A DNA stretch of 64,000 nucleotides from the sequence record OZ196593.1; one strand, written 5' to 3'. Below are positions 29,624-56,690 of this stretch, piece by piece. Every line of letters starts with the position of its first letter. Positions within the stretch are counted from its first letter, which is position 1. The notes beneath the pieces are model-generated. The model did not search any database, was not told where the DNA came from, and worked only from the letters and a program-made list of their open reading frames with translations. Made by a program: the position numbers and the translations under genes.

Positions 29624-31766
29624 GAGTTCATGCAATCGAAATCAACAATCTGACAACTGGCATGATGTGCGGTGGCGTGACTCAACAAGGTAGCTTGAAC
29701 TTTAAAGTTGACCGCATTCCCGCTGAAGCAATTTATGAACGTCACGGCAAGTTTCTGATCAGCAATACCGATGGTGTATGGCGTCATTTCACTATCGGCA
29801 GTCAAGGCGGCTTTGCAGGTCGCACGTTCAAGCTGAAGATGAAAGGCGGCAAAGTGTTCAAAGACAAGGGTTGGCACTACGAAGAGTTTGAAGGTAACTT
29901 GTGGGATTCTGCGGCTGGTCATGAGAAGTGCGAAGAACTTGCAGGCAGTCAACTGATCTCTATCGCGTTGCGTGCGTCTAGTGATCGCTGTCAAGTATAC
30001 TGTGGTGGTTATCTGTTCAGCTTAGAAGAAGTGATTCGTAAAATCGGTCACCTTGTTACACTGAGCAACCCAACTCAAAACCAATTCATCGACTTTGGTG
30101 GCTAATATGAATCAGTTTTTTAAATTAACAGAAGCGGGTCGCGTGAAAATTAGCAAATTTCTCACGGACGATGAAAAACTGTGCGCGGAAATTTCTGCGT
30201 ATAAAGATCTCATCGAAGAGCTAGAAGCATTGCGCCACGAAAAGGCTGGTGATGTTAGTGGTGAAATTTCACACATCTCACCCGCGTCTCTCATCTATAT
30301 GTCTGAGCTGTATCAATCGCGTGATGATATTACGGACAAGCGAGAAGAAGAGAACAGACATCTTAACGTTGCATGGGAGGCTTGCAATGAACGCAGATCC
30401 TAATAAGCGACTTGAACGACGAGTCGCTGAACTCGAACGTCAAGTTCGAATGCTAATGAGAGTTCCAAAAGAAAGGCTTGGTACTCGCGATCCCGATTAC
30501 ATAATCGAAGACGACTTTGTAGAAATGCACGAAGCGGACAATCACTTCGATGCGTTTCGCATTAAAGCCGAGTTAATCGCTGCACTGAGTCAGTCTTCAA
30601 TTAACTATCTTGAACTGACGTTTGAGAACTACCCTGAAGCTGCTCGATACAAGGTTTATCAGAATCATCTTATTCAAGAGACGAAGTTGACTGACGCAGA
30701 CCGTAAGAAGCTCGCTAAAACGCGCTATCTGCTCGCGTCAGAAGCGGAAGTGGGTGACGTGATAGAATGCCCGGGCTGTGGCACTAAAATCGCTAAGAAG
30801 ACGTATCAGCATCGTTTCTGTTCGCATAAGATTGTCGGTCAAAGCACTTGCAAAGACTTCATCAACAATTGGTTCAATCCCAAGCGTCTTGAGCGCACGT
30901 TAAAATGGTTGGAAAGCTAATGTTCGGAATATTCAAAAAGAAAAAATGGTTCGTTGTTGGGCGTTCTGAAAATCTCGACTTATGGACGGTGACACATGAC
31001 AGACCACAAGTGAAATGTCGTCTATTGCTTCTAGCGTCTGAGTGTGGTAGCCGCGACTACGTGCTTGATATGCTCGACGCATCGCCTAGCAAATTCAATT
31101 CGTCCATTCGCTACTGCATGATTGATCAGATCATCCCACGCGAATACGTACATAAGTTCTTGAATGGGTGGACTACTGACAAGATTAACCGCGTACACGG
31201 TCAGAAAGTGTTCAACATCGAGAAGACCCCATACGAATCATTCAAATCGTGGAGGTAGCTAATGCCAAGTACCACTTATGTTTGTTTTGATTGTCGCACG
31301 ACGAAGCGTTCTATAACTGAGCGTTTCTGGCATCACGTATCGCACGCTGATCCGTCATTGACGTGTCAACATTGTCGCGGTGAAATGAAACCGTTGTCTA
31401 GCAGTCACGCGATACCAAAGAAGAGCGACGACAAAGCATGGAGAGCTTTGATGCAGCACGTAAGCCAACTGCGCATCAAACAAGAAGCTGAAAACCGTTG
31501 GCGAAATCATAACAGATGCGTGAGGTTACGCGATGAAGCACAGAATAGTACATCTTAAAGACGGTCTTGGTATAGACGTGTATCGTCTTCAGTATAAAAC
31601 GACTTTCTTTCCATTCTGGCGATGGGTGAAAGGTCACGGAGAAGGCGGATCGTACGGGATTCGTGAGTTCATGACATCAACGACCGCAGAACAGCATATC
31701 ACGACTCGATTGAATCGAATCAAGAGTCGCAAGCTGCGCATAGTCGCATATCGAGAAGCACCTTAG
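29620..31766 (+). other. Hypothetical CDS 29620-30105, 30107-30403, 30387-30920 (C-terminal Zn ribbon), 30920-31258, 31262-31558 (CxxC/CxxC), 31533-31766
   Basis: Coupled ORFs; CPGCG...FCS..CKD and CFDCR...CQHCR motifs. Confidence 0.7.
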
Positions 31767-36540: not shown

Positions 36541-37968
36541 ATGAAAAAACTAATTTTAGCATCAGTTGTTTCGACATTCATCTTAGCCGGTTGTGGTGGC
36601 GGAGGTTCTGAGGGTGATTGTGGCGATTGCAACGCACCTGATCCAACACCAACAACTACGATCACTGGTAAAGTGATTGATGGTTACGTGTCTGGTGCGA
36701 CAGTCTTCTTAGATTTGAACGCAAACTCTGAGCTAGATAGCGGTGAGCCGTCAACTGTGACTCAAGCAGCGGGCGCGTACTCATTAGATTTGAACAGTGA
36801 TCAAGACGCATGTGTTGGCTATGTTCCAATCGTGACTCACGTTCCAGTCGGTGCGATTGACTCTGACTACGGTGAAGTTACAGAAGCTTATACGATGGTT
36901 ACACCGCCAACGTTTGAGCGCGACGAGCCGCAAAACGTCACACCACTGACTACAATGGTTTGGCAAGAAGCAATTTCTGGTCTAGAAATGGATCACTCTC
37001 AAGCATACGCAAATGGCGGGTGTCAAGAGATTGCACAAAACGAAGAGCTTTACAATGAGCTTTCAACTCAACTTGACGCGTCAGTTATCGAGTTTCAACG
37101 AGCTTACAACATGACAGAAGAAGAAATCTTCTCTGATTATGTTGCACGTGGTGACGTTGAAGCGCACGCACTAGCAGCCGCAGCGGTTGAAGGTTTTCAA
37201 CGTGCTTATGCTGAACGCGCAGTCATGATTGAAGAAGGTAAGCACGTGTGGGCACACATGTATACGTATGTTGAACAAGCGAATGCAAACACGCGTAACG
37301 CTAACCCGTATTCATGGAAACTTCATACTGGTTATAGTGAAGATTTGAGTGCTGATTCTGCACGAACTTACTCAGAAATCACGCTAGTTGATGATCTTGA
37401 TGCTCCGATTAACACGTATGTTATCTTTGCAACTGACGTACTTGACGACAAAGTGACACTTGAAACATACGACCGCGTTGCTGTGAGCACTGGTTTCATC
37501 ATCGATGATAACGTATGTAAAGGTTCAGTTGGATTTGATGCACATGATAAACGCGGTGAAGCAACATACTACCGTCGCATGGCAACTGGTCATCTAGTCG
37601 ATTCAGTTCAAGCATGTGCTGATAGCTACGACACTACGCTTACTAACGACTCAATCGAGCAGTCTTCTAATCTAGAATACTTCTACATGGGTTCAGAGAT
37701 TGGCGGTTCGCCTGCAATGGCTTACGACATCTACGACGTTGACGGCATCATCGGTGAGCTTGACAACTGGTACATTGGTTACTATCAAGTTGATACTGAA
37801 ATGCCATTCGCAGACTGGTGGAGAAAGGGTGTACGTCTTCCTGAGAACGACTTGATGACTGAACACACTCGTGACATCGACGGCTACGAAGAAACAACAA
37901 TCTGGTACAACGACGGTACATACGAGCGTACTTGCTTTGTTGACAGCGTACCAACAACATGTAAATAA
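36541..37968 (+). CDS. Large acidic lipoprotein with bacterial-type N-terminal beta-sandwich
   Basis: Lipobox FILAGC followed by GGGGS; ITGKVIDGYVSGATVFLDLN.N..LD.GEP...T...G.Y pattern. Confidence 0.8.
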   Translation: MKKLILASVVSTFILAGCGGGGSEGDCGDCNAPDPTPTTTITGKVIDGYVSGATVFLDLNANSELDSGEPSTVTQAAGAYSLDLNSDQDACVGYVPIVTHVPVGAIDSDYGEVTEAYTMVTPPTFERDEPQNVTPLTTMVWQEAISGLEMDHSQAYANGGCQEIAQNEELYNELSTQLDASVIEFQRAYNMTEEEIFSDYVARGDVEAHALAAAAVEGFQRAYAERAVMIEEGKHVWAHMYTYVEQANANTRNANPYSWKLHTGYSEDLSADSARTYSEITLVDDLDAPINTYVIFATDVLDDKVTLETYDRVAVSTGFIIDDNVCKGSVGFDAHDKRGEATYYRRMATGHLVDSVQACADSYDTTLTNDSIEQSSNLEYFYMGSEIGGSPAMAYDIYDVDGIIGELDNWYIGYYQVDTEMPFADWWRKGVRLPENDLMTEHTRDIDGYEETTIWYNDGTYERTCFVDSVPTTCK

Positions 37969-37978
37969 CACGATATTG

Positions 37979-38001
37979 AAAGCTCCTTCGGGAGCTTTTT
38001 T
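37979..38001 (+). terminator. UUCG intrinsic terminator
   Basis: AAAGCTCC-TTCG-GGAGCTTTTTT. Confidence 0.9.
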
Positions 38002-38003
38002 CG

Positions 38004-38032
38004 TTTATAGTGTCGTATAAACATAGTACAAT
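38004..38032 (+). promoter_or_regulatory. Promoter region of the radical-SAM operon (late-like and/or sigma70-like)
   Basis: TATAAACA at 38016-38023 (7/8 to T4 late TATAAATA); also TTTATA-17-TACAAT. Confidence 0.45.
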
Positions 38033-38047
38033 GATGATGAGGTGAAT

Positions 38048-39271
38048 ATGAAAACTGGAAATATACGTACTGAAGACGACCCAATTTGTTTAGCGCCATT
38101 TGTAGGCTTGTTTAGCGCGCCTGCTAGAATGTCGCCGTGTTGTGAAATGGTTCACGACGGCTATAAAGACTTAGACGAAATGTGGAATAGTGATTTGATG
38201 AAAGGTCTACGAAAGAGCTTCATCAACGGTGACACTGAAAACATACCGAACTACTGCAAAGACTGCTTAAAGTCTCCAACGTCACATCGTGACTATTACT
38301 ATCTACCTGACCGGTCTTACTACAAAGAGACGTTTGAAAAATACAAGCACAGCGTGCTAGAAGATGGCACGATGACTGAAACTCCAATTTCATATCTTGC
38401 AATCGGTGTTTCGAACAAGTGCAATCTCGCGTGTCGTATCTGTTACCCAGGTATCAGCTCGAAACGTCAATCTATCGCTGAGTCAATCGGTGAAATCTCT
38501 GTAAAAGAACTGCTACCGAGCTTAGTCGATGAAAAATACGAAGCGGACAACGAACTAGATTACGAGAAGCTTCTAATTGAGCACTCAGACACGCTAGACG
38601 AGGTTGTAATACATGGCGGTGACCCAACGCAACACAAAGATCTTCCGTTTCTTCTAGACCTCTTAGAGAAGCATTTAAAGCCCGATTGTAAAATCAGCTT
38701 CTTGTCGAACGGTACATTTAGAAAGTGCATTGACGGTGAAGTAATCTGGGACAAGCTGCGTCGCTTCAAAAATCTGCATGTTGTGTTCAGCATGGACAGC
38801 ACGAAAGAAGTGAACGAGTACAGTCGTACGGGATTGAAGCATGACAGACTAGTGAAACTCATTTGGGAAGCTAAAGAAGCAATCCCCCATGCATACATTG
38901 GGTGTCACGCGACGTTGAACAACATGACCGTAGTTCGATTTGCTGAGTTCTTAGCGTATTACGAGAAAGAGTTTTTCGACAGGGGTGTGTGGTTGAGCTG
39001 TAACGTAGTTAACGGCCCAAAAGAATACAGCCCGTGTAACTTGCCTGTTAAGCTGCGTGCTCAAGTAATGATGGACTTGCATAAACTGAAGTTCGACCAC
39101 TGGCATATGGAAGAAATGCGACAATGGGCTATCAAAGCTGTGACGTTGCAACCATTTGATCAGCATCTTTGGAACAAGTTCTTAGTGAAAGAACAGAAGA
39201 TGGACAAACTTGTTGGCGATGACATGTTCGCTGTCTTGCCTGAATTTAAGGAATATCAATGCATAATGTAG
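38048..39271 (+). CDS. Radical SAM protein 1 with N-terminal twitch/SPASM-like Cys domain
   Basis: CLAPF..SPCC..CKDC; CNLACRIC; HGGDPT; SNGT; FSMDS. Confidence 0.92.
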   Translation: MKTGNIRTEDDPICLAPFVGLFSAPARMSPCCEMVHDGYKDLDEMWNSDLMKGLRKSFINGDTENIPNYCKDCLKSPTSHRDYYYLPDRSYYKETFEKYKHSVLEDGTMTETPISYLAIGVSNKCNLACRICYPGISSKRQSIAESIGEISVKELLPSLVDEKYEADNELDYEKLLIEHSDTLDEVVIHGGDPTQHKDLPFLLDLLEKHLKPDCKISFLSNGTFRKCIDGEVIWDKLRRFKNLHVVFSMDSTKEVNEYSRTGLKHDRLVKLIWEAKEAIPHAYIGCHATLNNMTVVRFAEFLAYYEKEFFDRGVWLSCNVVNGPKEYSPCNLPVKLRAQVMMDLHKLKFDHWHMEEMRQWAIKAVTLQPFDQHLWNKFLVKEQKMDKLVGDDMFAVLPEFKEYQCIM

Positions 39272-40194
39272 TGTTTATTTCAAGTATAGGTGATGCAGAA
39301 TATCATTCGATTGGTCGCGTGTTGATTGAATCAATTCGTTATAATTCTCCTAACCCGAATTATGATTTAGTGTGGTTCATGGATGGTGAAGAAGTTGATA
39401 TGTCAGACGTTGATTGTATAACTGAGCGGGTTACCGCGCCGGTTATGCCGAACCCATTTAATTACCCAGATACGTTTGTGTCTGGGTGTGCGATGAAAAT
39501 AATATGTGCTGAATACCTACAACAGCGCGGTTATAAACGCGCAGTCTCTATTGATTTCGATACGATAGTGAACATAGATTTGAATGCATTATTTGATCTT
39601 GACATGAACGACATTGAAATCGCAGGTGTTTCTGGTTGCGGGTGTGCGATGTTCAGTCATTATAGTGAAAAGCTGCCAAAGATCAGGGACATTGGTGATA
39701 CGACATCGAACCCTGACATGTTTTGCAATAAGCCCGAGACCGATGAAGCAATATGTAAACGAAAGTTTAATGGTGGGTTGTATGTATTCAATATGGACAT
39801 GTGTGTGTTCAATGATTACGTTGAGTTGTATAAGAGCAACCCGATGAGAAATAATGACGAGGATTATGTGGAGCGCACGTTCACGAAGAAAATGATGCTC
39901 CCGCGTGAGTTGAATTACTTTGTGTTGTTTGGGGATCAGTTAATCAGACAGAACCCAGCTCTATACAAAAAAATTAACCACGACGCGTATAGCGCAAGTA
40001 TTATGCACTATCAGTATGTTTCTAAGCCATTTCATTTTGAAGGGCCCGGGAATCTGAACAATGAGCTTCATAGTCCGGTTAAGTATTTTAAATATTTTGA
40101 CCGAGTTCGTGACAAAATGCCCGACGTGTTTTGTGACAATGTTGATGCTTTCAAACGCTATTATAATGATGAACTGATAATGAGGTTGCGATGA
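39259..40194 (+). CDS. Glycosyltransferase family 8-like (GT-A)
   Basis: SIDFDTIV (DxD), FNGGLYVFN, IMHY...KPF. Confidence 0.85.
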   Translation: MHNVVFISSIGDAEYHSIGRVLIESIRYNSPNPNYDLVWFMDGEEVDMSDVDCITERVTAPVMPNPFNYPDTFVSGCAMKIICAEYLQQRGYKRAVSIDFDTIVNIDLNALFDLDMNDIEIAGVSGCGCAMFSHYSEKLPKIRDIGDTTSNPDMFCNKPETDEAICKRKFNGGLYVFNMDMCVFNDYVELYKSNPMRNNDEDYVERTFTKKMMLPRELNYFVLFGDQLIRQNPALYKKINHDAYSASIMHYQYVSKPFHFEGPGNLNNELHSPVKYFKYFDRVRDKMPDVFCDNVDAFKRYYNDELIMRLR

Positions 40195-41351
40195 AATGTA
40201 CATTACCATTTGATGGTTTTTTCGTAAACGCGATGGGAAAATTTTCCCCGTGCTGTGCGTTGTCTGTAATGAACGAAGACAGCAACGAGGAATCATCTAT
40301 CACGATTGACATGGATGGTGATTTCATAAATCACGAACGCATGGTCGAGCTACGCAAAGAACATGCAAGTTGTGATATCAAAAATCAGACATGCATCGAC
40401 TGCATCGCGAGATATAAAGGTAGTGACACGTTTAATAGTGATTTGGTGAGTGGTGAATTGCCTGACACATATGACGCAGACACGGGTCGAATATCAACGC
40501 CAGATTTCAAACATTTGAATGTCGCGTTTAGCAATCGCTGCAACTTAGCATGCCGTATGTGTTCTTCGATGAACTCTAATAAGTTTGGCGAAATGATGCA
40601 CAACAAGATTCGATTACAAGACATTATCTACTTGTCTGATCAGTGGTATAACGAAGAAAATCCAGGTAAAGTAAACAACGCATTTGATGATGATAGTCTC
40701 GGGTACTTAATAGAACATAGCCAGAACACTGACACCATAACTATTCATGGCGGTGAACCCTTTCTCGAACCGAGAGTCGTGCAGTTCCTTGATTCTGTGA
40801 AGAAAACGAAGAAGTTATACATCACAACTAACGGAACTCGTAAACCAAGGCAAACTATAATCGACGCGATTAATAATAACAACTCAGGTATAATGTTCAG
40901 CATCGAGGGTACGAAAGATGTACAGGAATATGTTCGAATCGGATCGAAGATGAGCGACATTTGGGATAATATAGCTTACATACGAGAGAAGTGCCCGAGT
41001 GCTGAGTTTTACACGAATACGGTTGTCACTGCGTACAACTGGCTAGATCTGGCTGATTTCATTCGTTTAGCACCTGAGTTTTCGAAGTTCGGGGTGGTAA
41101 ATATGTTCCTTGATTGGAACGCCACATATAGCCACATTGATTTCTTTCATGTTCTGAGCGAAGAAGATTTCAATGAGGGTAAGTCTAGACTTACTAGAGT
41201 CATGTATGATATACATCACATGGATATCCCAGAACGTCTAAAGCAGTCATGTAGAAAGTCAGTTCAGCAATTCGTTCATGCTAAATATCAACCAAATGAA
41301 CGTCTAAAAGGTCACTTTAATGAGTACAATAAACAAGTCGATGATTTGTAA
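40191..41351 (+). CDS. Radical SAM protein 2 (same architecture)
   Basis: CTLPF..SPCC..CIDC; CNLACRMC; HGGEPF; TTNGT; FSIEG. Confidence 0.92.
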   Translation: MKCTLPFDGFFVNAMGKFSPCCALSVMNEDSNEESSITIDMDGDFINHERMVELRKEHASCDIKNQTCIDCIARYKGSDTFNSDLVSGELPDTYDADTGRISTPDFKHLNVAFSNRCNLACRMCSSMNSNKFGEMMHNKIRLQDIIYLSDQWYNEENPGKVNNAFDDDSLGYLIEHSQNTDTITIHGGEPFLEPRVVQFLDSVKKTKKLYITTNGTRKPRQTIIDAINNNNSGIMFSIEGTKDVQEYVRIGSKMSDIWDNIAYIREKCPSAEFYTNTVVTAYNWLDLADFIRLAPEFSKFGVVNMFLDWNATYSHIDFFHVLSEEDFNEGKSRLTRVMYDIHHMDIPERLKQSCRKSVQQFVHAKYQPNERLKGHFNEYNKQVDDL

Positions 41352-42450
41352 AGCACCGTTCACGTCTCAAGTAGTGTGGACTAGTGGCGAAGTTCAGATG
41401 TGTTGTAATGATCAGCCGAGTGAAAAGCAATACAGCTTAGAAGATGAATGGAACAGTGAGTCGCGCAAACAAGCACGACGTGAATGGTTGTCGGGTGAGA
41501 TTCCCGACCGTTGTAAGTCATGCGTGAAGCGTATGGAATCTGGTGATGCTACTCTCCCTGTTTGGTATGACAAGATCATCGAAACAGTTGAGCTAACCGA
41601 AGAAGTATCAATGCCTGTTTATCTGCATATGAGTCCGTCGAATCAGTGCAATCTCGCGTGTCGCATGTGCAACGGTGAGATATCAAGCACGTATGACAAA
41701 CTGATATGTGATTCATCGAATGGCGAACGACACAATGACATCGTTGAATATGTGAAGAAATGCTTGCCAAAGCTTGAGCACTATGTTTTTCACGGCGGTG
41801 ACCCGATGTTCTACAAAGACTTTCTTCGCGTTGTCGAAGTGCTGAAAGGGCGTAAAGATGATTTGTACATCAACGTAATCACGAACGGCACGCATCACAA
41901 GTCAGATGGCGTTGATATGATACCGCATTTGAAAGAGTTCAAGAACTTGAAAGTGACGTTTTCGATTGACAGCATCGGCAAGTACAACGACTACATGCGT
42001 ACTCTGACCAAGACGAGTCGCGTTGTTGACAACTTCAATAAATGGTGTCGCGAAGTTCCTCATGCAGAAATGTCTATACACACCATAACGACGAACATTT
42101 CTTCGCTCGGTATCGTTGAGCACTTGCGCAATATATACAACAGCGATATGTTTGACCGAGTTGATGCGTTCAGTCATTTCATGGTTGACTGGCCAGTTGA
42201 ATATCGCGTACACAATCAACCACCTGCGATGCGTCAGCGCGTGCTAGATAGCATCAATGAATTTCGCGATGAAGTCGAATCGTATATCGGTGCAGATATT
42301 GAAACTGCTAAGAACATTCTGATTAATATTGAGCGACAATTCGAACGACCATTTGACATTAAAGAATGGGCAATGTTCTTGAAGAAGAACAAAGAACACG
42401 ATGTACTGAGTAAATCAGACACGAGTATAATTGAAATTATGAAGGTCTAA
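41320..42450 (+). CDS. Radical SAM protein 3 (start may be 41341)
   Basis: CKAPF..QMCC..CKSC; CNLACRMC; HGGDPM; ITNGT; FSIDS. Confidence 0.92.
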   Translation: MSTINKSMICKAPFTSQVVWTSGEVQMCCNDQPSEKQYSLEDEWNSESRKQARREWLSGEIPDRCKSCVKRMESGDATLPVWYDKIIETVELTEEVSMPVYLHMSPSNQCNLACRMCNGEISSTYDKLICDSSNGERHNDIVEYVKKCLPKLEHYVFHGGDPMFYKDFLRVVEVLKGRKDDLYINVITNGTHHKSDGVDMIPHLKEFKNLKVTFSIDSIGKYNDYMRTLTKTSRVVDNFNKWCREVPHAEMSIHTITTNISSLGIVEHLRNIYNSDMFDRVDAFSHFMVDWPVEYRVHNQPPAMRQRVLDSINEFRDEVESYIGADIETAKNILINIERQFERPFDIKEWAMFLKKNKEHDVLSKSDTSIIEIMKV

Positions 42451-42451
42451 A

Positions 42452-43537
42452 ATGAAGAAAATTGGGATTATGATTGACGGCTATTTTGTGTCGTCTGGTT
42501 CTGGCATTAATACGTACGTACGTCACTTGTGTCAGACGCTGATTAAAGATCTTGGTTATGATGTGACGCTGTTCGTCGATACTCCGATTGAAGAGAAAGT
42601 GAGTCTCAATCAATACAACAAAATCGGTGTGAATATCGTGAACGCAAACGAGAACTATCGCGTGCGTACGTTCACTGCGTCATTCGAAGAGAATCACGTA
42701 GCTAGAGTATTCAAAGACATTTGTCAACCGTGGGTCGATGAGCATAAGCCAGTCGCGATGATTTCTCATAGCTACGGAACTGCTCTTGCTGTGCGCGACT
42801 TAGAGTTCGATGGTAAGAAATGCATCGTCACTCATATCGGTGATGTAATGGCGCCTGACTTACCCGACTTGTGGGACTTTGAAGATCATACAGTGCGCAG
42901 CTTCTTGCAATCGCTTGACAATAACGACATTGATTTGGTGTGTCAGACAGAAGGGATTGTGGACAATCATCTTAAAGTGCTGAAGAATCGCGACCGAAAG
43001 AGTTGTATTGTGTGTCATGAACCATTTCACGTTGCGATTGACCGACAGCTTAGACCTGTTCGTGAGGGAGCGATTGTAGTGGCGGGTAATTACAAGCGTA
43101 AGCGACTGCACGACGTGATCGATGTGTGCGCTAAAGCTGACATACCCTTGACGATAATCACGGGCGATAAGACGGGTTACGGCGAAGATTTAGACATGTA
43201 TTGCATCAAGCAAAAGGTTCGATACAACATCATCGAGAAACTAGCGAACGATTTCGTTGTTCCTCAGATTAGAAGTCATCGAATCATGATTCACTTGAGC
43301 GACATTGAAGTGTGTCCGTACAGTGTAATCGAAGCGATGCCGTACGTGCATTGTTTAGTGAAGAAAGGCGCGCCGTGGACTCACAAGTTTTACCCTGAAT
43401 ACACGACGCGAATCGATTTAGATGACATAGACATCGTAAAAGATGCCTATGAGAATTACGACAAGTACGAGACAATGGATCTCGCTGAGTATCAGAAGTC
43501 AGTTAACGACTCATGGGAAGCTTACTTGAGTTCGTGA
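42452..43537 (+). CDS. GT-B fold glycosyltransferase (GT4-like)
   Basis: N-terminal GSGINTY..L...L...GYDVT; C-terminal E-X7-E (IEVCPYSVIEA). Confidence 0.75.
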   Translation: MKKIGIMIDGYFVSSGSGINTYVRHLCQTLIKDLGYDVTLFVDTPIEEKVSLNQYNKIGVNIVNANENYRVRTFTASFEENHVARVFKDICQPWVDEHKPVAMISHSYGTALAVRDLEFDGKKCIVTHIGDVMAPDLPDLWDFEDHTVRSFLQSLDNNDIDLVCQTEGIVDNHLKVLKNRDRKSCIVCHEPFHVAIDRQLRPVREGAIVVAGNYKRKRLHDVIDVCAKADIPLTIITGDKTGYGEDLDMYCIKQKVRYNIIEKLANDFVVPQIRSHRIMIHLSDIEVCPYSVIEAMPYVHCLVKKGAPWTHKFYPEYTTRIDLDDIDIVKDAYENYDKYETMDLAEYQKSVNDSWEAYLSS

Positions 43538-44784
43538 AGTTCATCTTGAAGTTTGAAAAGGGCGATTAGATTATCGTCCTTTTCTTTTAAGTGCGTTGAG
43601 TAATCGCCTGTCCAAAACTCACAAGCTGAAACCGCAGCTTGATACACAAAGTTTTCCAATTCACCGTAGCGTTCTGCATACGGTTCCAACTCATCAATGA
43701 GTATTTTCAAACGTCGTACCGTGTCATCTAGAACTTCTGGTGCGAGATCTTCGACAATCAGCTCTGGTCTACCCGTCACATATTCAAATGAACAGCAATT
43801 CACACCCATATCTTTATACTCAGTCAATATTTCGCGTAGAAACTCTGGCATATGCGGGTATGTGATGCGTGTAACGCACGCTGCGATGTTGTAACACACT
43901 TCAGGGTTGTAAGCTATGTATTCACGCAAATTCTTCTTCACGTGCTCTGTGTTCGTTCCTAGACGCTGGTAGTCATTTATCTCTGCAATCGAATCGATGC
44001 TGAAATTCACGACATGTAAGTTGGGTTGGTCAAGCATTGTTCGAATACGGTCATTCAGCTTGATCGTACCATTCGTCACGACACCAATTTCACTTGTGCT
44101 TTCAACGATGAAATCAATCGTCTTGTTATTCATCAATGGCTCACCGCCAACTACCGATGTGATCGTGTGACTGTCAGTGTATTTGTGAATCGTAGATGGG
44201 TTGATTTCTTTCTCAAGTGGCACGAAACATGCTTCGACGGAATTCAATTTCTCGCTTTGTTTACGAGCAGTCGGATGTTTGTCGTATTTCTTGCGAATCT
44301 TATTTGATGCATATGAATTACACATGCGGCATTCGAGGTTACAATTACTGCCGAAACTGATTACATTGTTTTTCAGTTTGACGTTTGTATTGTCGTAATC
44401 CCATGAACCATCTTCGCCAGTCTCAACGAAAATATCTTCAGCATCTTGACCGCGCAATAAACGCAATCGACTTCGATGTTCTTTTGACACTTCATCACAG
44501 AAAACAGTTTTACCCCGAGTTTCGATACACTGAGCGCACACTTTATTCATCGGCTGTTCGCCAATCATTTGCAAGCGTAGATTTTTCATCGCTTTTGTGT
44601 TCATATCTTTGTTGAGTTCGAAAGGCGTGTCGTCGTAGACATACTCAGGGTCGAGTTCTTTCATGTGAGCTGACAGCCAACAACAAGGGGCGATTTCATT
44701 GTTCGCCCCAATTTGCAGACCAGCCCAGGGATAGTGACACGGAACCGTATCAGGAATTTGTGGCGTGGCGTATGTGTTCTGCAT
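43522..44784 (-). CDS. Radical SAM protein 4 (same architecture)
   Basis: CHYPW..APCC..CAQC; CNLECRMC; GGEPL; TNGT; FSIDS. Confidence 0.92.
   Translation of the reverse strand: MQNTYATPQIPDTVPCHYPWAGLQIGANNEIAPCCWLSAHMKELDPEYVYDDTPFELNKDMNTKAMKNLRLQMIGEQPMNKVCAQCIETRGKTVFCDEVSKEHRSRLRLLRGQDAEDIFVETGEDGSWDYDNTNVKLKNNVISFGSNCNLECRMCNSYASNKIRKKYDKHPTARKQSEKLNSVEACFVPLEKEINPSTIHKYTDSHTITSVVGGEPLMNNKTIDFIVESTSEIGVVTNGTIKLNDRIRTMLDQPNLHVVNFSIDSIAEINDYQRLGTNTEHVKKNLREYIAYNPEVCYNIAACVTRITYPHMPEFLREILTEYKDMGVNCCSFEYVTGRPELIVEDLAPEVLDDTVRRLKILIDELEPYAERYGELENFVYQAAVSACEFWTGDYSTHLKEKDDNLIALFKLQDELHELK
43556..43588 (+). terminator. Terminator of the plus-strand operon, inside the 3' end of the convergent gene
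   Basis: AAAAGGGCGAT...ATCGTCCTTTTCTTTT. Confidence 0.6.
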
Positions 44785-45763
44785 ATTTTTTATCTCTCAT
44801 TTCAATAATATTTTCAAGTAACTCTAGGTGCTCTGCATTGCACATTTGACCTAGCAGTCTTTCATCGTCTTTGAGATATTTAATAAGCAAAGAAAAGTCG
44901 GCACAGAATATACCCTGTCCCAATCGATGTAGAGGTACACCAATCTGCATTTCTTTTTTCACACGCTCGAATTGATAGTGGAAGTATTTTTGTTCATACA
45001 GATACTGAACGATTCGACGGTCTTCTGTGTGATGACGTGTCAATTCGCGAATGAAATCTTCTTCAGTTTCCATATGGTTTAGATGTGTCCACGTACGTAT
45101 GTTGTACGCGTTACTGATCACTTTGAAATTGCCATTGATCATGATGTTCAAGAACTCTTGATCACAATATCGTTGATAGTACAAGTCGCACCACATTCTG
45201 AAATCTGGTAGATTCAGCTTGCGCCATTCTGCACAGTCAGCAACAACAAGCCCTGCATTGAACGTCATCGGTACTGATTTAAGTAGCGCGATGAACTTTT
45301 CGCTTGCATCGGGGTGATCTAGATTGCGCCAGTAGTCATAATGACCGTCCATGCCGAAATCTTTATGCCAATCCATGTTACTTGCCATCGGTTTACCCTC
45401 AAGATCGCAAGTCACTAACTCGTCAAGATTGCCACACGCAACCATATCTAAGTCGAAGTAGATGGCGCGTTCATATTTCCCCTCACGAGCTGCGTGCTCT
45501 AATGAGTCAGGACAAAGACTGAACGCAGGTAAAGCAAACGCTTGATCCCCGTCTAATCCCTCAAGATCATGTTTCGGTAGTTCGATGATCTCGACTGGGA
45601 ATTCATCTATAACACATGGTACAGTTTCAGCATCATTCGTGTACCAACGATAATCAACGTCTTCAGTAATATTGTCATGAATTGAGCGAAGTACGATATT
45701 ACCCCACTTCGCATAGTCAATGTTTTGGTTACTGGTAGCGACGTACACTACGCATTTAGCCAA
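44750..45763 (-). CDS. Glycosyltransferase family 8-like (GT-A); TTG start after GGAG RBS
   Basis: YFDLDMV (DxD), FNAGLVVAD, DQEFLN, AYN motifs. Confidence 0.85.
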   Translation of the reverse strand: MAKCVVYVATSNQNIDYAKWGNIVLRSIHDNITEDVDYRWYTNDAETVPCVIDEFPVEIIELPKHDLEGLDGDQAFALPAFSLCPDSLEHAAREGKYERAIYFDLDMVACGNLDELVTCDLEGKPMASNMDWHKDFGMDGHYDYWRNLDHPDASEKFIALLKSVPMTFNAGLVVADCAEWRKLNLPDFRMWCDLYYQRYCDQEFLNIMINGNFKVISNAYNIRTWTHLNHMETEEDFIRELTRHHTEDRRIVQYLYEQKYFHYQFERVKKEMQIGVPLHRLGQGIFCADFSLLIKYLKDDERLLGQMCNAEHLELLENIIEMRDKKYAEHIRHATNS

Positions 45764-46835
45764 TGTATTTCTCCCAAGGTGAAGCATCCCACGAAGAGCG
45801 TACTTCTTTTTCAGAAACAGAGAACGTGTCAACGGTCTCAATCAAAACGCCAAGAACTTCAACGGGATCGCTGTAATCTGAAATGTCGATTACTGAATCT
45901 TTGTCAAGGTCGATGTCAGCGCCTTTCAAAATGTATTTGTACGAGTCGATGACGTTTTCAGATACCGATTCGATGTTGTGCAAGTTGTAGTCGATAACCA
46001 TTGCAGCTTCACACAAGTCTTTCACTTCAGATGAATCAATAGTCGTGATGATATCGATTTTGAAACCAAGCGGTGCGACCGACTGTAGAATCGAATCAAG
46101 CTCGTCTTTCTGATTACACACAATGCCCAATGAGTTCGTGTTGATGACGCTTACAAGGTCATACAGCTCGATAAATTCACGATTTACGATATCATTCAGC
46201 TCTGGACGAACGTTGTCGATGTACAGTTGAGAATGGGGAATCGACCAAGTGATATTTTCAAGGTCATTTGTACACTTGCCGCTGAAGCTCAAGCACTTCT
46301 TATCAGTCCCGCCAAGCTTATTGATCATGTGATCTGCTTGCTCAGAGAATGACACGAATGTTTGAATGCTACCAAAGTCAGCCGTTTCGTCAGTCAACCC
46401 GTCGAAAATAAATGCTGTTTTGTACTTTGATGATAGATGACGCACAAGCGTATCTTCGCGCAGCGGTGCAAGTAAGATAATCTTTTTGAAGTTCAGACGA
46501 TTCAACGAGTTTACCGAAAGCTGTAGTCGTGAAATATCGCGCACAGCGTCTTCGTAGTTCATCGTATCATCAACCATAATCGCGATTGTCGAACCGTCGA
46601 TATCAACATTGGTATCTTCTTCACGAATTCGAAGCAATCCCCATTCGAATTCAATCTGTTCTTTCGTAACTTCGATGATGTTGTCAAAGCTGTCTTTCAG
46701 TGTTGCGCACTTAGCGTCAGCGTCACACTCAAGCACTTCATACGTGCGGTCATCGGGGTCAAGTGAAGACACGACATAAAGCATTTTCTCTTGAAAATAC
46801 TTCGGATTGTCGCGCAGTTCTTTAATCGTTATCAT
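45756..46835 (-). CDS. Acidic hypothetical protein, possibly a degenerate Rossmann/GT-A-like fold
   Basis: 359 aa; alpha/beta pattern TIAIMV...LSVNSL..KKIILL; coupled to both neighbours. Confidence 0.6.
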   Translation of the reverse strand: MITIKELRDNPKYFQEKMLYVVSSLDPDDRTYEVLECDADAKCATLKDSFDNIIEVTKEQIEFEWGLLRIREEDTNVDIDGSTIAIMVDDTMNYEDAVRDISRLQLSVNSLNRLNFKKIILLAPLREDTLVRHLSSKYKTAFIFDGLTDETADFGSIQTFVSFSEQADHMINKLGGTDKKCLSFSGKCTNDLENITWSIPHSQLYIDNVRPELNDIVNREFIELYDLVSVINTNSLGIVCNQKDELDSILQSVAPLGFKIDIITTIDSSEVKDLCEAAMVIDYNLHNIESVSENVIDSYKYILKGADIDLDKDSVIDISDYSDPVEVLGVLIETVDTFSVSEKEVRSSWDASPWEKYIG

Positions 46836-47509
46836 GTTTTAATCCTATTTTTGAACACAAGTGACATGTAAGAGTATGAACCCGAAATGCCGCCTGTCTG
46901 ACTGCCATAACTATTTGATACTGTGCCTAACGACGCGCCACTTTTGTAACCTGCTAGAGACGTGCTTGTTGTATTGAACACAGCGTAACCAGAGTTTGCG
47001 TGATAAATGTAGTAGTACACTCTATATAGTGTCGCAGTACCGTACCATGCACCCCATGATGGGTAACGACCACTATCCATTAGACCTTTAACAGCAGCTA
47101 AGTTTGTGCTTCCGTCTTTCACGTAAGCCCACGTGTTGTAGCCGCCACTCGCCCCTGATACTGTAATTGAACGACTTGTGTTGTTATTGATCCATGAACC
47201 AACTGGTGCATAGTAGAACGTACCGTCGATGTTATCGTAACGTTTCGTCGTGAACTGAAAACGTACTTGAATCGCGTCCATCCAAAGACCGTGATTGTCG
47301 CTCGTAGCTGAACCGGCTAGGTTGTACATTGACACTGCGCCATTGTCTGGCATTAGTGTATCGCCGTTCGTACCCCAGTATGTGTAACGCGGCAATTGAT
47401 TGGCAGTTGAAACCGACTGAGTTGACGTGTGTACTTGACGGTAGTTGCTCAATGCAGTTCCGTAGTTCTTACACCAAGCGTCACGAATCGCTGTAATTGA
47501 AACACTCAT
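46832..47509 (-). CDS. Late Gly/Ser/Thr/Tyr-rich protein; putative tail-fibre adhesin or virion appendage
   Basis: Composition; P..GAVSMYNLAGS resembles the N-terminal attachment motif of gp38-like adhesins; perfect late promoter upstream. Confidence 0.55.
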   Translation of the reverse strand: MSVSITAIRDAWCKNYGTALSNYRQVHTSTQSVSTANQLPRYTYWGTNGDTLMPDNGAVSMYNLAGSATSDNHGLWMDAIQVRFQFTTKRYDNIDGTFYYAPVGSWINNNTSRSITVSGASGGYNTWAYVKDGSTNLAAVKGLMDSGRYPSWGAWYGTATLYRVYYYIYHANSGYAVFNTTSTSLAGYKSGASLGTVSNSYGSQTGGISGSYSYMSLVFKNRIKT

Positions 47510-47554
47510 TATTAATGTCCTCAGTGTTTAAAATTGAAATAAGTAGCTATACAA

Positions 47555-47562
47555 TATTTATA
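47555..47562 (-). promoter_or_regulatory. T4-type late promoter
   Basis: TATTTATA on plus = TATAAATA on minus, 45 nt upstream of the 47509 start. Confidence 0.75.
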
Positions 47563-47584
47563 GTTAACACATAGCGAGAAAATC

Positions 47585-48055
47585 ATGAGAAATTATAGCG
47601 ATCTACTGTTCAACGTACTGACGAATGGTCGTCCAGTATCAAATACTGAAATTCAATTGCAAGGCGTTACGTTTGAACACAGCGCGCCACACGCCCCAAT
47701 CACGTGCATGTTCGATCATGAGATCAAGTTCGAAGAAGATGAAACTCACGTAATCGATATGATTGACGAGTTGACCTATGTCAAGCAAGTCGGTGTTGTG
47801 TCGCCTTTACAGATGTATATTGAGACTGTTCACGGCTACTTAAATACACTGTATCGCTCACAAAAGACTGGACAGCCAGTCGGTCGCATCGTCATTCAAG
47901 CTGAAGCAGTTGAAGTTAAGCGCGAAGACATGGACGCGTATTTGAATATCATCGGTAAAGAAATGGTGTTCGGGCCGCGTCTTGAAGGGTCGCCAGTAAC
48001 GGCAGAATTCGTTGACGGTGAGCTGAAATTAAACAACTTCAATATCATTGGGTAA
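47585..48055 (+). CDS. Truncated or degenerate thymidylate-synthase-fold protein
   Basis: YSDLLFNVLTNG resembles the TS N-terminus; QKTGQPVGRIVI and GPRL...NFNIIG resemble the TS C-terminus; catalytic PCH absent. Confidence 0.45.
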   Translation: MRNYSDLLFNVLTNGRPVSNTEIQLQGVTFEHSAPHAPITCMFDHEIKFEEDETHVIDMIDELTYVKQVGVVSPLQMYIETVHGYLNTLYRSQKTGQPVGRIVIQAEAVEVKREDMDAYLNIIGKEMVFGPRLEGSPVTAEFVDGELKLNNFNIIG

Positions 48056-48060
48056 AATAA

Positions 48061-48510
48061 ATGAAAAAACTTCTTGCAATTGCTGCAACAGCACTGCTAT
48101 TATCAGCTCCAGTTCAAGCAGATGACATTTCGCTTCACATCGGGTCATATACACATGCGTGGGATGACGACCGAATGAACGAACAGTCATTTAACATCGG
48201 TGGTCGTTATGAAGACTTCGCGTTCGGTTACATTGATCGCAACGTCTTTGACAATCACAGTGTTTATGCTTATTGGAACCCTCGCGTTTACAAGTCAGAA
48301 CATTTCGACTTCGGCTTTGCACTTGGTGCACAGACGGGTTGGGAAGATGACGCTTGCTACGACGGCTGGGGTTATGAAGACAAATTTACAATCGGTGATC
48401 ATATTGCACCGCTAGTTGGTCTGACAGCAGAAGCTAAAGTCGGTGACGTTGGCATTGAAACTGTCATCACGCCTATGCTAGTGCGTACAAACTTTGTGAT
48501 TCACTTCTAA
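48061..48510 (+). CDS. Secreted small outer-membrane beta-barrel, PagP-like
   Basis: Signal peptide (VQA/DD), alternating beta strands, H..D..R.NE...GG and FDFGFALG motifs, C-terminal Phe. Confidence 0.55.
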   Translation: MKKLLAIAATALLLSAPVQADDISLHIGSYTHAWDDDRMNEQSFNIGGRYEDFAFGYIDRNVFDNHSVYAYWNPRVYKSEHFDFGFALGAQTGWEDDACYDGWGYEDKFTIGDHIAPLVGLTAEAKVGDVGIETVITPMLVRTNFVIHF

Positions 48511-48520
48511 GGGTGAATAA

Positions 48521-49327
48521 ATGGAGCTAACAGAATCGATTACAGTTCATGGTCGAGCGTTGCACACTGAGAAAGCGGTTGGGGTGATTTTACACCCCGC
48601 TGAACACGGCATATCATTTACGATTAAAGGGGCTACTTTTCATAGCTCGTCGCGCTCAACCGTTTCGAAAGAACTATGTTCGATGATGATGTTTGATATC
48701 AAACGTCATGTTCTGACGTACGAACATCTTTTAGCTGCACTGAATCAGTTGCACATCCCGAACATTCGCATTGAATTGCTTGATGGTGCAACTGAACTGC
48801 CAATTCTTGACGGTTCCGCTCAGGGTTGGGTTGATTTGTTGAAGTACAACATCAAGTCGATGGGGCAGACTAAATTTAATCAGATTAAATTAATCAAGCC
48901 TGTTACTGTGCGCGATGGCGATGCGTATATCATTGCGCTACCGTCACGTGAGCCGGTTTACTCGTACGAGCAAAACTTCGATCTTCACGCGACTCAAAGC
49001 ATGACGAGAATGAAAATGTTCAACTTGTCTCGCGGTGATTGGTTTGATATCATGGCTGAACCGACGATTACCGTCGAAGGCATGGGCAACGAGCACAAAT
49101 ACAACACTGGTTTTTCGAATTACATCTCCGACGAAAGCACGTCGTGCCATCGCGACTCGCTTGTAAATCACAAGTTACTAGACTTGATCGGTGATACGTA
49201 CGCAAACGGTATGCGCTTAATCGCAGACATCGAAGCGTACAAAACGGGTCATTCGCATAACAACATGTTGATGCGAAAGATATTGAGTGATGAGACGAAT
49301 TACATCATCGTTCAAAAAGAAGTTTAA
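48521..49327 (+). CDS. lpxC: LpxC-family Zn-dependent deacetylase
   Basis: G..LHT.K, TYEHLLAAL, ELPILDGSA, NHKLLDLIGD, AYKTGH..N: all catalytic and Zn motifs present. Confidence 0.9.
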   Translation: MELTESITVHGRALHTEKAVGVILHPAEHGISFTIKGATFHSSSRSTVSKELCSMMMFDIKRHVLTYEHLLAALNQLHIPNIRIELLDGATELPILDGSAQGWVDLLKYNIKSMGQTKFNQIKLIKPVTVRDGDAYIIALPSREPVYSYEQNFDLHATQSMTRMKMFNLSRGDWFDIMAEPTITVEGMGNEHKYNTGFSNYISDESTSCHRDSLVNHKLLDLIGDTYANGMRLIADIEAYKTGHSHNNMLMRKILSDETNYIIVQKEV

Positions 49328-54359: not shown

Positions 54360-55415
54360 TTATTTTACCATTTTGATTTCTATCTTGTTGGTCATGTATG
54401 CCATTTTCTTTTCGAACTCGACATCATATTCTGGTCGATGTTCATACTCAACTGACAACATTTCTTTCAAGCAACGAAACAGCTCGTTCTTGTAGTACCC
54501 TTCTTTCATGCCTTGCATTTGCTTGTATTGCTTCTGCATAGCTTCTTTGATGATATCGGGGTGCATGAACTTGATTGACATTTCACGCGGTGCTTTCACA
54601 GTACCGAAGTCAACGTACACTTGAGCCTTTTCTGCGACTTGAATGAAGTCGTAGATTGTGTCGTAGCTCATACGCGATAGCGTGTGGTGCATACACAAGT
54701 GTTTGCTGTGTGCTTTAAGAATCGGCACGTTAGCAAGCATCAAGTCGTGATCGATATTCTGGCGAATGTATTCGTTACGCTCTTTACCGCCATCACATGA
54801 GATTGTGAACACGATGCGACTGCGGTACAGTTTACATAGTGCTAGAATCTTCTTAGCTAATGGTGTGTGCAGAACAGTTCCGTTTGTCAGAATGAACACT
54901 TCAGCTTTAGTGTCTTCAAGCACTTCTTTCAGCACTTCAAGAGTACGCTTGTCCATGAACGGTTCACCACCATACAGAACAACAGTTTCAACGCCTTTCG
55001 GGATGCTGAAGTCAAGCTGCTTGTAATCGTATTCATCTTCGATATCGTACAAGTCCATGTACGTCTTGCTGTTCTTGCCGTAGCACATACGACATGCAAG
55101 GTTACATTTGTTTGACATCAAGATTTGAATCGTACGCGGGTGCTCTTCTAACGCCTCATATTCGAAGTATTTCTGATCAGAAAGTTCACCGTAGCTCATA
55201 CACTCTTTGCAGTATTCTGGTAGAGTGTCGTAGTCGAACATGCGTTCGCGCACTTCATTGATGATATCAGAGTGCCACCAGTCTTCAACGTTCTTGAATG
55301 GCTCACTTAGCTGAGAACAGCAAATGTGATAACCGTCTGGCTTTGCGTCGCGTGTGTTGAATGGAGAGCCGCACAGCGGCTTTCTCCCGTCTTTAAATCC
55401 GAACTTATCTAACAT
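54360..55415 (-). CDS. Radical SAM protein 5 (same architecture)
   Basis: CGSPF..HICC..CKEC; CNLACRMC; YGGEPF; TNGT; ISCDG. Confidence 0.92.
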   Translation of the reverse strand: MLDKFGFKDGRKPLCGSPFNTRDAKPDGYHICCSQLSEPFKNVEDWWHSDIINEVRERMFDYDTLPEYCKECMSYGELSDQKYFEYEALEEHPRTIQILMSNKCNLACRMCYGKNSKTYMDLYDIEDEYDYKQLDFSIPKGVETVVLYGGEPFMDKRTLEVLKEVLEDTKAEVFILTNGTVLHTPLAKKILALCKLYRSRIVFTISCDGGKERNEYIRQNIDHDLMLANVPILKAHSKHLCMHHTLSRMSYDTIYDFIQVAEKAQVYVDFGTVKAPREMSIKFMHPDIIKEAMQKQYKQMQGMKEGYYKNELFRCLKEMLSVEYEHRPEYDVEFEKKMAYMTNKIEIKMVK

Positions 55416-55684
55416 TAGTTTAACTCATCTAGCAGTGATTGAAATTCTTCGTCGCGTTCAGCGTCTAATACGCCATTCATAAGTGCTTCGAGCGCGTCTA
55501 GAGATTGAATCTCTGGTGCTTTTGGTCGAAGATCTTCGAGAATATGAATCAACGATTCTTGTGGTAGGTCGTTATACACGATTTCGTCTGGTAATTCGTG
55601 TTTGTAAACACAGCCATCACCCCAATCGATTACGACTGCGTGTTCCCATTTGTCAATTTCTAGTATTTTAAAGTTCGGTTTCAT
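55415..55684 (-). CDS. Small acidic hypothetical protein
   Basis: 89 aa, overlapping both neighbours. Confidence 0.7.
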   Translation of the reverse strand: MKPNFKILEIDKWEHAVVIDWGDGCVYKHELPDEIVYNDLPQESLIHILEDLRPKAPEIQSLDALEALMNGVLDAERDEEFQSLLDELN

Positions 55685-56690
55685 GTTTTAATCCCCAGAG
55701 TGCTTCCCACTGCTCTCTTGACTGAGCGCGGTACATTTCAATATTCAATTTTTCATGTGGTTTTTTGATAACGTCTTTAACGATATTCGTCAAGTTACCT
55801 TTGTTTATATCGGCTTTTTCAACCGGAAAGATGAAGTCGCGTGTATACGGTGCATCATGTTGAACAATACACGGGATGTATTGACTCGCTTCTAATATCG
55901 CATACGGCATGATCTCGATGTGAGACATGTGCAGCAAGCATTTACTCTTCATCATCGCAGCGATTACTTTCTCGCGTGGCTGACATACGTGAACTTTGCA
56001 GTCTAATCCGGGTGGCGGAGTAGTCGTTCCCGTGCTGTATACATGCACTTTAAGCCCGCTCTTAGCTAACGAGCGAAGCATTTCGGGTATTTGCTTACGT
56101 TTGTATGCGCCAGACACAATAACCACGTCAGTCTCTTCAGCAGCGTCTAGCTCTTCTTGTGATATCTTCGGTAGTTCGAATGGTTCGAATGCTGTGACGT
56201 GTTTGCCACCCATTAGATATTCGCCCCAATACTTAATGCCGTCAGACTGAGCAATGTTCGTAACTAGACGTTCGATGCTCATCATTTGTTTCCACTGCTT
56301 GAGATTGTACATCATGTGAATGTCCATGTACTTCTTGTAGCTCTCAGGCACGATTAAGTCACCGAAGTGATGTTGATTATAGCATTTACGATTCGCTTCA
56401 ATACAAGCGCGTAGAGCTTCAAATGAGTGCGTATAGATGATAGTGTCTTCATCTAGTGAGCGCATCGCCATCGCGTTTGCTTTGTAGTCATCAAAAGCGC
56501 GATTGGTAAGAACATGTTCGCAACCGAAGTCCCAGTATTTTGCATGAGGACAATATTTGTCACCAAGTACAATCACTTTGACATCGCAATTATACGTCTT
56601 CATTAATCGGACGTGATCTTGAATGAATGTATAGATACCACCACCGATACCTAGCATAAAATCAGTGACCACATAACGAACTTTTTTCAT
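55668..56690 (-). CDS. GT-B fold glycosyltransferase (GT4-like), paralogue of 42452-43537
   Basis: GGGIYTF; HFGDL; YKRK; E-X7-E (IEIMPYAILEA). Confidence 0.75.
   Translation of the reverse strand: MKKVRYVVTDFMLGIGGGIYTFIQDHVRLMKTYNCDVKVIVLGDKYCPHAKYWDFGCEHVLTNRAFDDYKANAMAMRSLDEDTIIYTHSFEALRACIEANRKCYNQHHFGDLIVPESYKKYMDIHMMYNLKQWKQMMSIERLVTNIAQSDGIKYWGEYLMGGKHVTAFEPFELPKISQEELDAAEETDVVIVSGAYKRKQIPEMLRSLAKSGLKVHVYSTGTTTPPPGLDCKVHVCQPREKVIAAMMKSKCLLHMSHIEIMPYAILEASQYIPCIVQHDAPYTRDFIFPVEKADINKGNLTNIVKDVIKKPHEKLNIEMYRAQSREQWEALWGLKHETEL

Follow-up and report, generated by a model that had tools for sequence, protein, structure and literature searches.

The genes VPHK566_0311, VPHK566_0310, VPHK566_0309, and VPHK566_0308 (below, 0311 to 0308), located on the minus strand of a 64,000-nucleotide stretch of sequence record OZ196593.1 (the window), are predicted to form a late operon, an assignment that is well supported in silico. 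The unit opens with a basic protein of 225 amino acids (aa) and continues with an acidic protein, a family 8 glycosyltransferase (GT8), and a radical S-adenosylmethionine (SAM) enzyme. Positions 43522 to 47600 match, at 100% identity, Vibrio phages K566 and K567 and no other among 50,697 phage records. These two phages, with genomes of 255 kb in which the record position equals the window position plus 123,500, are KVP40-like T4-type myoviruses (Schizotequatrovirus) of Vibrio crassostreae. The account that we favor, with a confidence somewhat above even, is that of a late unit in a swapped accessory island, the first product of which is a nonenzymatic protein made late and in bulk, associated with the virion or the cell surface, and not of the gp38 type. 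The association with virion or surface is itself a best guess.

The minus strand carries TATAAATA, an element of the T4 late-promoter type, at 47562..47555, exactly 45 nucleotides (nt) before the ATG (47509) of 0311, where a preliminary description of this DNA had placed it, and GAGGA stands 8 nt ahead of the same ATG. It is the sole perfect copy in the window. T4-type late promoters are read by gp55 together with gp33 and the sliding clamp, and a homologue of the gp33-type late coactivator is encoded by K566 (phrog_254, 7e−21). The use of the motif was scanned over 164 kb of K566, comprising the 64-kb window and record positions 1 to 50000 and 205001 to 254938. The first 50,000 positions of the record contain seven perfect copies against 1.56 expected, a number reached in 0 of 100 shuffles, and five of these seven are located 29 to 43 nt before the genes for sheath (37 nt), scaffold (29 nt), the major head protein (39 nt), 0011, and uvsW. 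Four more copies occur in record positions 205001 to 254938, two of them 21 nt before a wedge gene and 39 nt before the fibritin gene. Eight of the 12 perfect copies in the 164 kb, including that of the operon, thus lie 21 to 45 nt before a same-strand start, where about 4% would be expected (binomial P = 3e−9). Two variants are used in the same genome, with ACTAAATA before the head-closure gene and TCTAAATA before the tube, long tail fiber, gp48, and 0426 genes; both resemble the late-promoter variant of the T4-related phage Aeh1 (PMC2988020). The window is also depleted of near-copies, with 26 8-mers at no more than one mismatch from TATAAATA against 60.5 ± 7.8 expected (100 of 100 shuffles gave at least 26). 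This is the pattern expected where stray late-promoter-like signal is avoided, and it suggests selection against such sites. The element at 47562..47555 is accepted as a likely, predicted late promoter, and the earlier proposal of a T4-type late promoter driving a packed four-gene unit agrees with the presence of the same 8-mer before structural genes and of gp33.

The minus strand of the 75-nt spacer that holds the element shows no sigma-70-like −35/−10 pair. The plus strand of this spacer carries the sigma-70-like match TTTAAA-17-TACAAT (47527..47555, +; 9/12 consensus), which faces 0312, the PagP-like and LpxC-like genes, and nadV; matches of 9/12 occur at about chance frequency in the region, and this one is weak. 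Late-type cores were also observed in the sister phage 6E35.1a, in which GCTAAATA precedes a leftward radical SAM gene by 36 nt (L002:13607, −) and TCTAAATA precedes a gene 30.2-like gene by 23 nt (L002:16430, −), both with a CTAAATA core. The corresponding genes of KVP40 have no late-type core.

The four genes follow one another with overlaps of 4, 32, and 35 nt, which bears out the earlier statement that they succeed each other without gaps. No terminator-like site was found on the minus strand, either between the four genes or past the last stop codon, and the one weak minus-strand terminator match (43641..43622) is inside 0308. An intrinsic-terminator-like hairpin of 12 pairs followed by a T run (43555..43584, +) belongs to the convergent unit and falls within the last codons of 0308; its T run is missing on the minus strand. 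Given the lack of a minus-strand terminator and T run, late transcripts should read on antisense to 0307-0303. This convergent unit (38048..43537, +) encodes, according to family matches, a radical SAM enzyme, a GT8, two further radical SAM enzymes, and a GT4-like protein in the order 0303 to 0307, and its last gene overlaps 0308 by 16 nt. The preliminary description had also placed an upstream motif before this plus-strand half. The motif, TATAAACA, is real (38016..38023, +), situated 24 nt before the ATG (38048) of 0303 and downstream of a hairpin at 37978 to 37999, but it lacks the TAAATA core common to 12 sites before structural genes and uvsW and sits within a sigma-70-like promoter match. 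It is probably not a late promoter.

The first gene, 0311 (46832..47509, −), encodes a basic (isoelectric point [pI] 9.35), Ser/Thr/Gly/Tyr-rich protein of an orphan family. These four residues make up 44% of the protein versus 22% pooled over the neighboring genes, as expected from the richness described previously. The protein has no match in Pfam, PHROGs, NCBIfam (E ≤ 0.01), or PADLOC, and a sequence search of the PDB returned nothing for any of the four operon products. A HMMER scan of 1.84 billion representatives retrieved three real relatives, with 31 to 41% identity. One (P0002) is on a 28-kb metagenome scaffold; another (P0004) stands for a 90% cluster of 20 members, of which the 14 named members listed are 13 from V. 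parahaemolyticus and 1 from V. natriegens; and the third (P0005) is from V. breoganii. The family therefore comprises four lineages at 50% identity, confined to Vibrio and vibriophages. No further member was present in IMG/VR, GTDB genomes, JGI metagenomes, or the 50,697 phage records, and a profile search of 5.8 billion proteins added none.

All four family members are basic (pI 9.0 to 9.4) and share 25 invariant columns over the full length, many of them aromatic or Gly. Because the invariant columns run along the whole length, the pattern is that of a folded domain and not of a mucin-like acceptor tract. AlphaFold2 applied to the four sequences gave a ten-strand, sheet-rich domain at residues 78 to 220, with a predicted local distance difference test (pLDDT) score of about 70 to 80 there; the N-terminal third is unresolved in this model, and 0311 as a single sequence reached a pLDDT of 27. 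A β-sandwich is thus predicted at about residues 78 to 220. The Ser and Thr residues are spread over the predicted sheet-rich domain, not gathered in a low-complexity tract, and a variable Ser/Gly-rich segment near the C terminus is modeled with low confidence.

Other identities considered for 0311 were set aside. A match to a giant cadherin-repeat adhesin (P0003; 3,903 aa) has an E value of 5e−22 that sums 31 weak repeats at about 25% identity, and the matching stretch is not conserved in the 0311 family; judged from the sequences, it is treated as compositional and at most as a hint of a β-sandwich. A precursor of a ribosomally synthesized and posttranslationally modified peptide is at odds with 225 aa, a predicted folded domain, and conserved aromatic and Gly positions throughout, with no short leader-core peptide. 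By inspection, the N terminus has no acidic residue in the right place for a T4-type internal protein with a capsid-targeting leader, and an outer-membrane barrel is disfavored by the lack of a signal peptide.

The second gene, 0310 (45756..46835, −), overlaps the upstream gene by 4 nt and encodes an acidic protein (359 aa; pI 4.31) with no family (Pfam, PHROGs, NCBIfam, or PADLOC) or PDB match. A single relative was found, encoded at the equivalent place of a metagenome scaffold (L004/L005) and 33% identical. The third gene, 0309 (44750..45787, −; 345 aa, or 363 aa from an alternative TTG start at 45841), is a GT8 glycosyltransferase that matches Pfam PF01501 at 2.6e−12 (47.3 bits against a gathering cutoff of 24.3), with a DxD motif visible in the translation. 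Its best NCBIfam match, a weak one, is to a lipopolysaccharide (LPS) 3-alpha-galactosyltransferase model, and it occurs in none of the other phage records. The fourth gene, 0308 (43522..44784, −; 420 aa), is a radical SAM enzyme whose N-terminal region forms a twitch (half-SPASM) cysteine domain. The identities of acidic protein, GT8, and radical SAM enzyme assigned at first sight are therefore confirmed.

The radical SAM enzyme 0308 matches NCBIfam NF033640 at 2e−41, with 142.4 bits, under the curated cutoff of 170, and its paralogue 0306 passes with 193 bits. The E values of the three island enzymes scanned range from 2e−41 to 8e−57, and 0303 was grouped by alignment and Pfam only. Eight Cys columns, namely, those of CxxxCxxC and five N-terminal cysteines, are invariant in nine paralogues. 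As 0308 scores below the NF033640 cutoff, it is best regarded as a divergent relative working like the family and not as a certified member; its closest relative is the syntenic copy on L004 alone, at 50% identity. We know of no NF033640 family member with a known substrate, and literature searches on N-terminal twitch radical SAM enzymes found nothing. Identification as a viperin (pVip) or defense enzyme was rejected, as the viperin model gives 34 to 50 bits against a cutoff of 180, compared with 142 to 193 bits for the twitch model. The PADLOC pVip match (1.5e−11) spans the radical SAM core only, and the viperin label reflects, at the sequence level, generic similarity of this core. A QueE-like enzyme or a role in DNA hypermodification was likewise set aside, the PHROG matches being weak (about 1e−8).

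The gene order of K566, 0312 | 0311-0310-0308 | 0307-0306, recurs on L004/L005 with 25 to 58% identity. On L004 the homologues of 0311, 0310, and 0308 are 36, 33, and 50% identical, those of the converging genes 0307 and 0306 are 52 and 58% identical, and further radical SAM genes accompany the latter two. The variant ACTAAATA is found 31 nt before the first ATG of this unit, that of the 0311 homologue. The GT8 seems absent from the L004 operon, though not with certainty, as the sequence is interrupted at this junction by 100 Ns inside a tandem repeat of 7 nt. This repeat (L004:2440-2600; L005:2065-2096) lies between the acidic homologue and the radical SAM gene, and both assemblies broke at it, L004 with the gap and L005 with the end of its contig.

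Relatives of the N-terminal twitch radical SAM enzymes are far more widespread than the 0311 family, with 502 in IMG/VR and 95 in GTDB genomes, the latter mostly from predatory Bdellovibrionota. In viral loci they form arrays, with a median of 4 (range, 1 to 8) per locus within 8 kb on either side, and their neighbors are mostly more radical SAM enzymes, carbamoyltransferases, and 2-oxoglutarate-Fe oxygenases. Glycosyltransferases are not typical neighbors, which makes the K566 cassette unusual. None of 157 other loci with twitch radical SAM genes (L011-L087 and L088-L167) contains a relative of 0311, 0310, 0309, 0304, or 0307. Together with the surroundings of the bacterial 0311 homologues (next paragraph), this comparison indicates that the enzymes do not generally need 0311, nor 0311 the enzymes.

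The two bacterial homologues of 0311 both end blocks of small genes in recombinase-flanked chromosomal islands of Vibrio. Radical SAM genes, glycosyltransferases, and relatives of 0310 are all absent within 10 kb of either, and the neighbors include defense-type genes encoding a TIR protein that matches PDC-S35, a DUF4145 protein, and a PDC-S71-like protein. The closest bacterial homologue, which belongs to the 90% cluster with V. parahaemolyticus and V. natriegens members, lies in an island of about 19 kb (L006:1-19000; GCA_016817955.1, contig JADOWR010000002.1) with a large serine recombinase at its flank, a resolvase, and a phage-type helicase-like gene. This island contains four perfect copies of TATAAATA, all intergenic, against 1.56 expected (7 of 100 shuffles reach four). 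Three of the four are 26 to 43 nt before the first gene of a block, and one follows a terminator-like hairpin and lies 43 nt before the block with the 0311 homologue. Judging by this pattern, the island may be coupled to late transcription in KVP40-like phages.

The operon belongs to the accessory island VPK566_0302-0314 (36541..49327; 12.8 kb), which replaces a different cassette of the sister phages. These phages (6E35.1a, K575, and others) match 45 to 46% of window positions 30000 to 54000 at about 98% identity, with their own cassette placed between a homologue of KVP40.0253 and nadV. The paper describing these phages (PMC12028318, ISME J 2025) reports the replacement of island 6E351A_0314-0326 by VPK566_0302-0314, together with glycosyltransferase and lipid A genes, and labels both the ancestral cassette and its replacement “anti-defense island.” Its Table S8 assigns no function to 0310 or 0311 and flags the radical SAM genes as “Defense? 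pVip.” A term search of that text found no mention of a late promoter, and its available passages contain neither the operon structure, the second GT8 (0304), the N-terminal twitch assignment, nor the Vibrio-island relatives.

The island encodes four N-terminal twitch radical SAM enzymes (0303, 0305, 0306, and 0308) and three glycosyltransferases (the GT8 proteins 0304 and 0309 and the GT4-like 0307), as well as PagP-like and LpxC-like proteins. Its first gene, 0302 (+), at the left end of the stretch from 36541 to 37999, encodes a very acidic protein (475 aa; pI 4.09) with a signal-peptide-like N terminus and no family match, and the hairpin at 37978 to 37999 after it is terminator-like. VPHK566_0304 (39259 to 40194, +), annotated as hypothetical, is the second GT8 (Pfam 8.2e−8; 32.6 bits against a cutoff of 24.3). 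To the right of the operon and ahead of nadV are the PagP-like gene (48061 to 48510, +), with a signal peptide and a match to phrog_3600 (1e−13), and the short LpxC-like gene (48521 to 49327, +; 268 aa), with a Pfam LpxC match of 1.3e−40 and a score under the NCBIfam cutoff. Both are lipid A enzymes carried by a lytic phage, and they are mentioned in PMC12028318. A second leftward unit is present at 54360 to 56690 (−), consisting of 0324 (a relative of the GT4-like 0307 family), 0323 (89 aa, very acidic), and 0322 (radical SAM); it has no late-type element upstream, the best 8-mer having two mismatches.

From the use of the motif in the K566 genome and from T4 biology, we propose that after the onset of replication a gp55/gp33-type late RNA polymerase would initiate a few bases downstream of TATAAATA at 47562..47555. 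Transcription would pass through four overlapping and probably translationally coupled genes, and the transcripts would extend in antisense orientation into the convergent unit, where the signals are sigma-70-like. The expected products are the basic sheet-rich protein of 225 aa, the acidic partner of 359 aa, which would travel with it as in the only other known cassette, the GT8, and the N-terminal twitch radical SAM enzyme. The last two would be the late-expressed members of a seven-enzyme tailoring set split over two convergent units.

Several observations weigh against this account of a late, virion- or surface-associated protein. The single copy of TATAAATA in 64 kb, against 1.83 expected, is within chance, and gp55 was not located in the parts of the K566 genome that were read; the same holds for gp45. 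According to a review, gp55 homologues are kept across T4-related phages (PMC2988020). Late promoters also precede nonstructural genes, such as uvsW, so that late timing does not prove a role in the virion. The four-sequence model of 0311 has low-to-moderate confidence (pLDDT of 55 overall and predicted template modeling [TM] score of 0.60, from a shallow alignment), and a Foldseek search of the PDB and BFVD with this pLDDT-55 model retrieved nothing significant (best E value of 0.07 in the PDB and 0.006 in BFVD, with TM scores of ≤0.22). L004 is a metagenome scaffold whose phage origin is not established, and as its cassette and that of K566 are homologous, the linkage of the 225-aa gene with the enzymes counts as a single evolutionary observation. 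The copy number of the motif also speaks for a reading in which TATAAATA arose by chance or serves as a host-type −10 element, since the 8-mer contains a 5/6 match to TATAAT, and the unit is not late. This we consider very unlikely: the minus-strand spacer lacks a sigma-70-like pair, a lone random site has a chance of about 4% of falling 15 to 60 nt before a same-strand start, and a functional signal is indicated both by the distribution of the motif over the genome and by the scarcity of near-copies.

If the unit is late, the question becomes what the enzymes act on. They may have a non-protein target, such as a host envelope glycolipid or LPS, a small molecule, or a sugar nucleotide, with the 225-aa and 359-aa proteins as separate passengers, and this is a serious possibility, although we do not think it probable. 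It would fit the PagP-like and LpxC-like genes and two further glycosyltransferases of the island, the GT8, whose best NCBIfam match, though weak, is to an LPS galactosyltransferase model, the arrays of phages and Bdellovibrionota that never include a relative of the 225-aa protein, and the sister island, where a late-type core precedes a radical SAM gene and no 0311-like gene occurs. Glycosyltransferases are, however, atypical beside radical SAM arrays elsewhere, the phage receptor is LamB and not LPS (PMC12028318), and late expression of envelope-modifying enzymes brings no evident benefit. The basic and acidic proteins could instead be a counterdefense or defense-related pair for which late timing is incidental, as the “anti-defense island” label and the “Defense? 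pVip” flag on the radical SAM genes in PMC12028318 might suggest, together with the bacterial homologues in recombinase-flanked islands beside defense-type genes. Such a pair seems unlikely to us, as PADLOC returned nothing for either protein and the viperin matches come down to the generic radical SAM core. Counterdefense genes, moreover, are usually expressed early and not driven by late promoters.

The preliminary description had favored a gp38-like tail-fiber adhesin, tailored or glycosylated at assembly by the cotranscribed GT8 and radical SAM enzymes. The segment P..GAVSMYNLAGS on which the likeness was based is present at residues 54 to 66. The late promoter right before the gene, the enzymes in the same unit, the 44% of Ser, Thr, Gly, and Tyr, the variable Ser/Gly-rich segment of the low-confidence C-terminal model, the cohesion of the 225-aa, acidic, and radical SAM genes in L004, and the reported glycosylation of mycobacteriophage virions would all suit such a protein. 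Yet neither a gp38 family match (Pfam, PHROGs, and NCBIfam) nor a significant fold match (PDB and BFVD) was obtained. The gene is not beside tail-fiber genes: the unit is far from the tail genes, as had been stated, at about 170 kb of the record compared with fiber genes at 22 to 29, 204 to 206, and 246 to 249 kb, so that about 140, 34, and 76 kb separate it from the respective groups. The L004 operon probably lacks the GT8, although the gap in the heptamer repeat leaves some doubt, and no such enzymes accompany the family members in the islands of V. parahaemolyticus and V. breoganii. The LamB receptor-binding protein of K566 is assigned, in PMC12028318, to a different, fiber-tip-like gene, numbered VPK566_0420 or _0422. 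The gp38-type reading of 0311 is not supported by these sequence and model comparisons, and the tailored adhesin as a whole appears quite unlikely.

The favored account, a late-made, nonenzymatic protein of the virion or surface, is separate from the question of its modification. That the 225-aa protein is the acceptor of the enzyme product is doubtful; a host envelope glycoconjugate is a marginally better candidate for the target, itself short of probable, and something else may be acted upon. The broadest version, in which the 225-aa proteins make up a new family of the virion or surface, tailored late by a dedicated glycosyltransferase and radical SAM pair, and in which the V. parahaemolyticus islands could respond to the late sigma factor that KVP40-like phages bring in on infection, is a long shot. 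If true, a tailored virion or surface protein of this kind would be the first such system in Straboviridae and would give a first handle on the widespread, array-forming N-terminal twitch radical SAM enzymes. Phage protein tailoring has so far been documented mainly for actinobacteriophage virions, and late timing with modification of the 225-aa protein would extend it to T4-like phages. As it stands, the analysis improves the annotation of an accessory island that was already published, points to the sole predicted late unit in the 64 kb, and corrects the labels “viperin-like” of the published table and “gp38-like” of the first reading.

Compared with known systems, the unit shares with T4-type late units an identical 8-mer with no −35 element, 20 to 45 nt before the start, and a gp33 homologue (PMC2988020). 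It differs in that it would drive accessory genes in a swapped island and not core virion genes, with the timing being predicted. The NF033640 enzymes, including the “moaA/nifB/pqqE family” genes of KVP40, have the same N-terminal Cys-rich half-SPASM region and CxxxCxxC motif and the same tandem or convergent arrays, whereas 0308 falls below the curated cutoff (142 versus 170 bits) and has the L004 copy as its only close relative. With the gp38-type adhesins of T2, T6, and S16-like phages, 0311 has in common that it is a small, predicted-late, Gly/Ser/Thr/Tyr-rich protein of a T4-like phage, in contrast to which it lacks a family or fold match and does not adjoin the distal fiber gene. In mycobacteriophages, virions are reportedly glycosylated, a finding said to come from Freeman et al. 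in 2023, with transferase genes beside capsid and tail genes and glycans demonstrated on the virions themselves. The K566 unit resembles these systems in that the phage supplies its own glycosyltransferases, with a late phage protein as their possible target; unlike them, it stands at a distance from the structural genes and also encodes a radical SAM enzyme.

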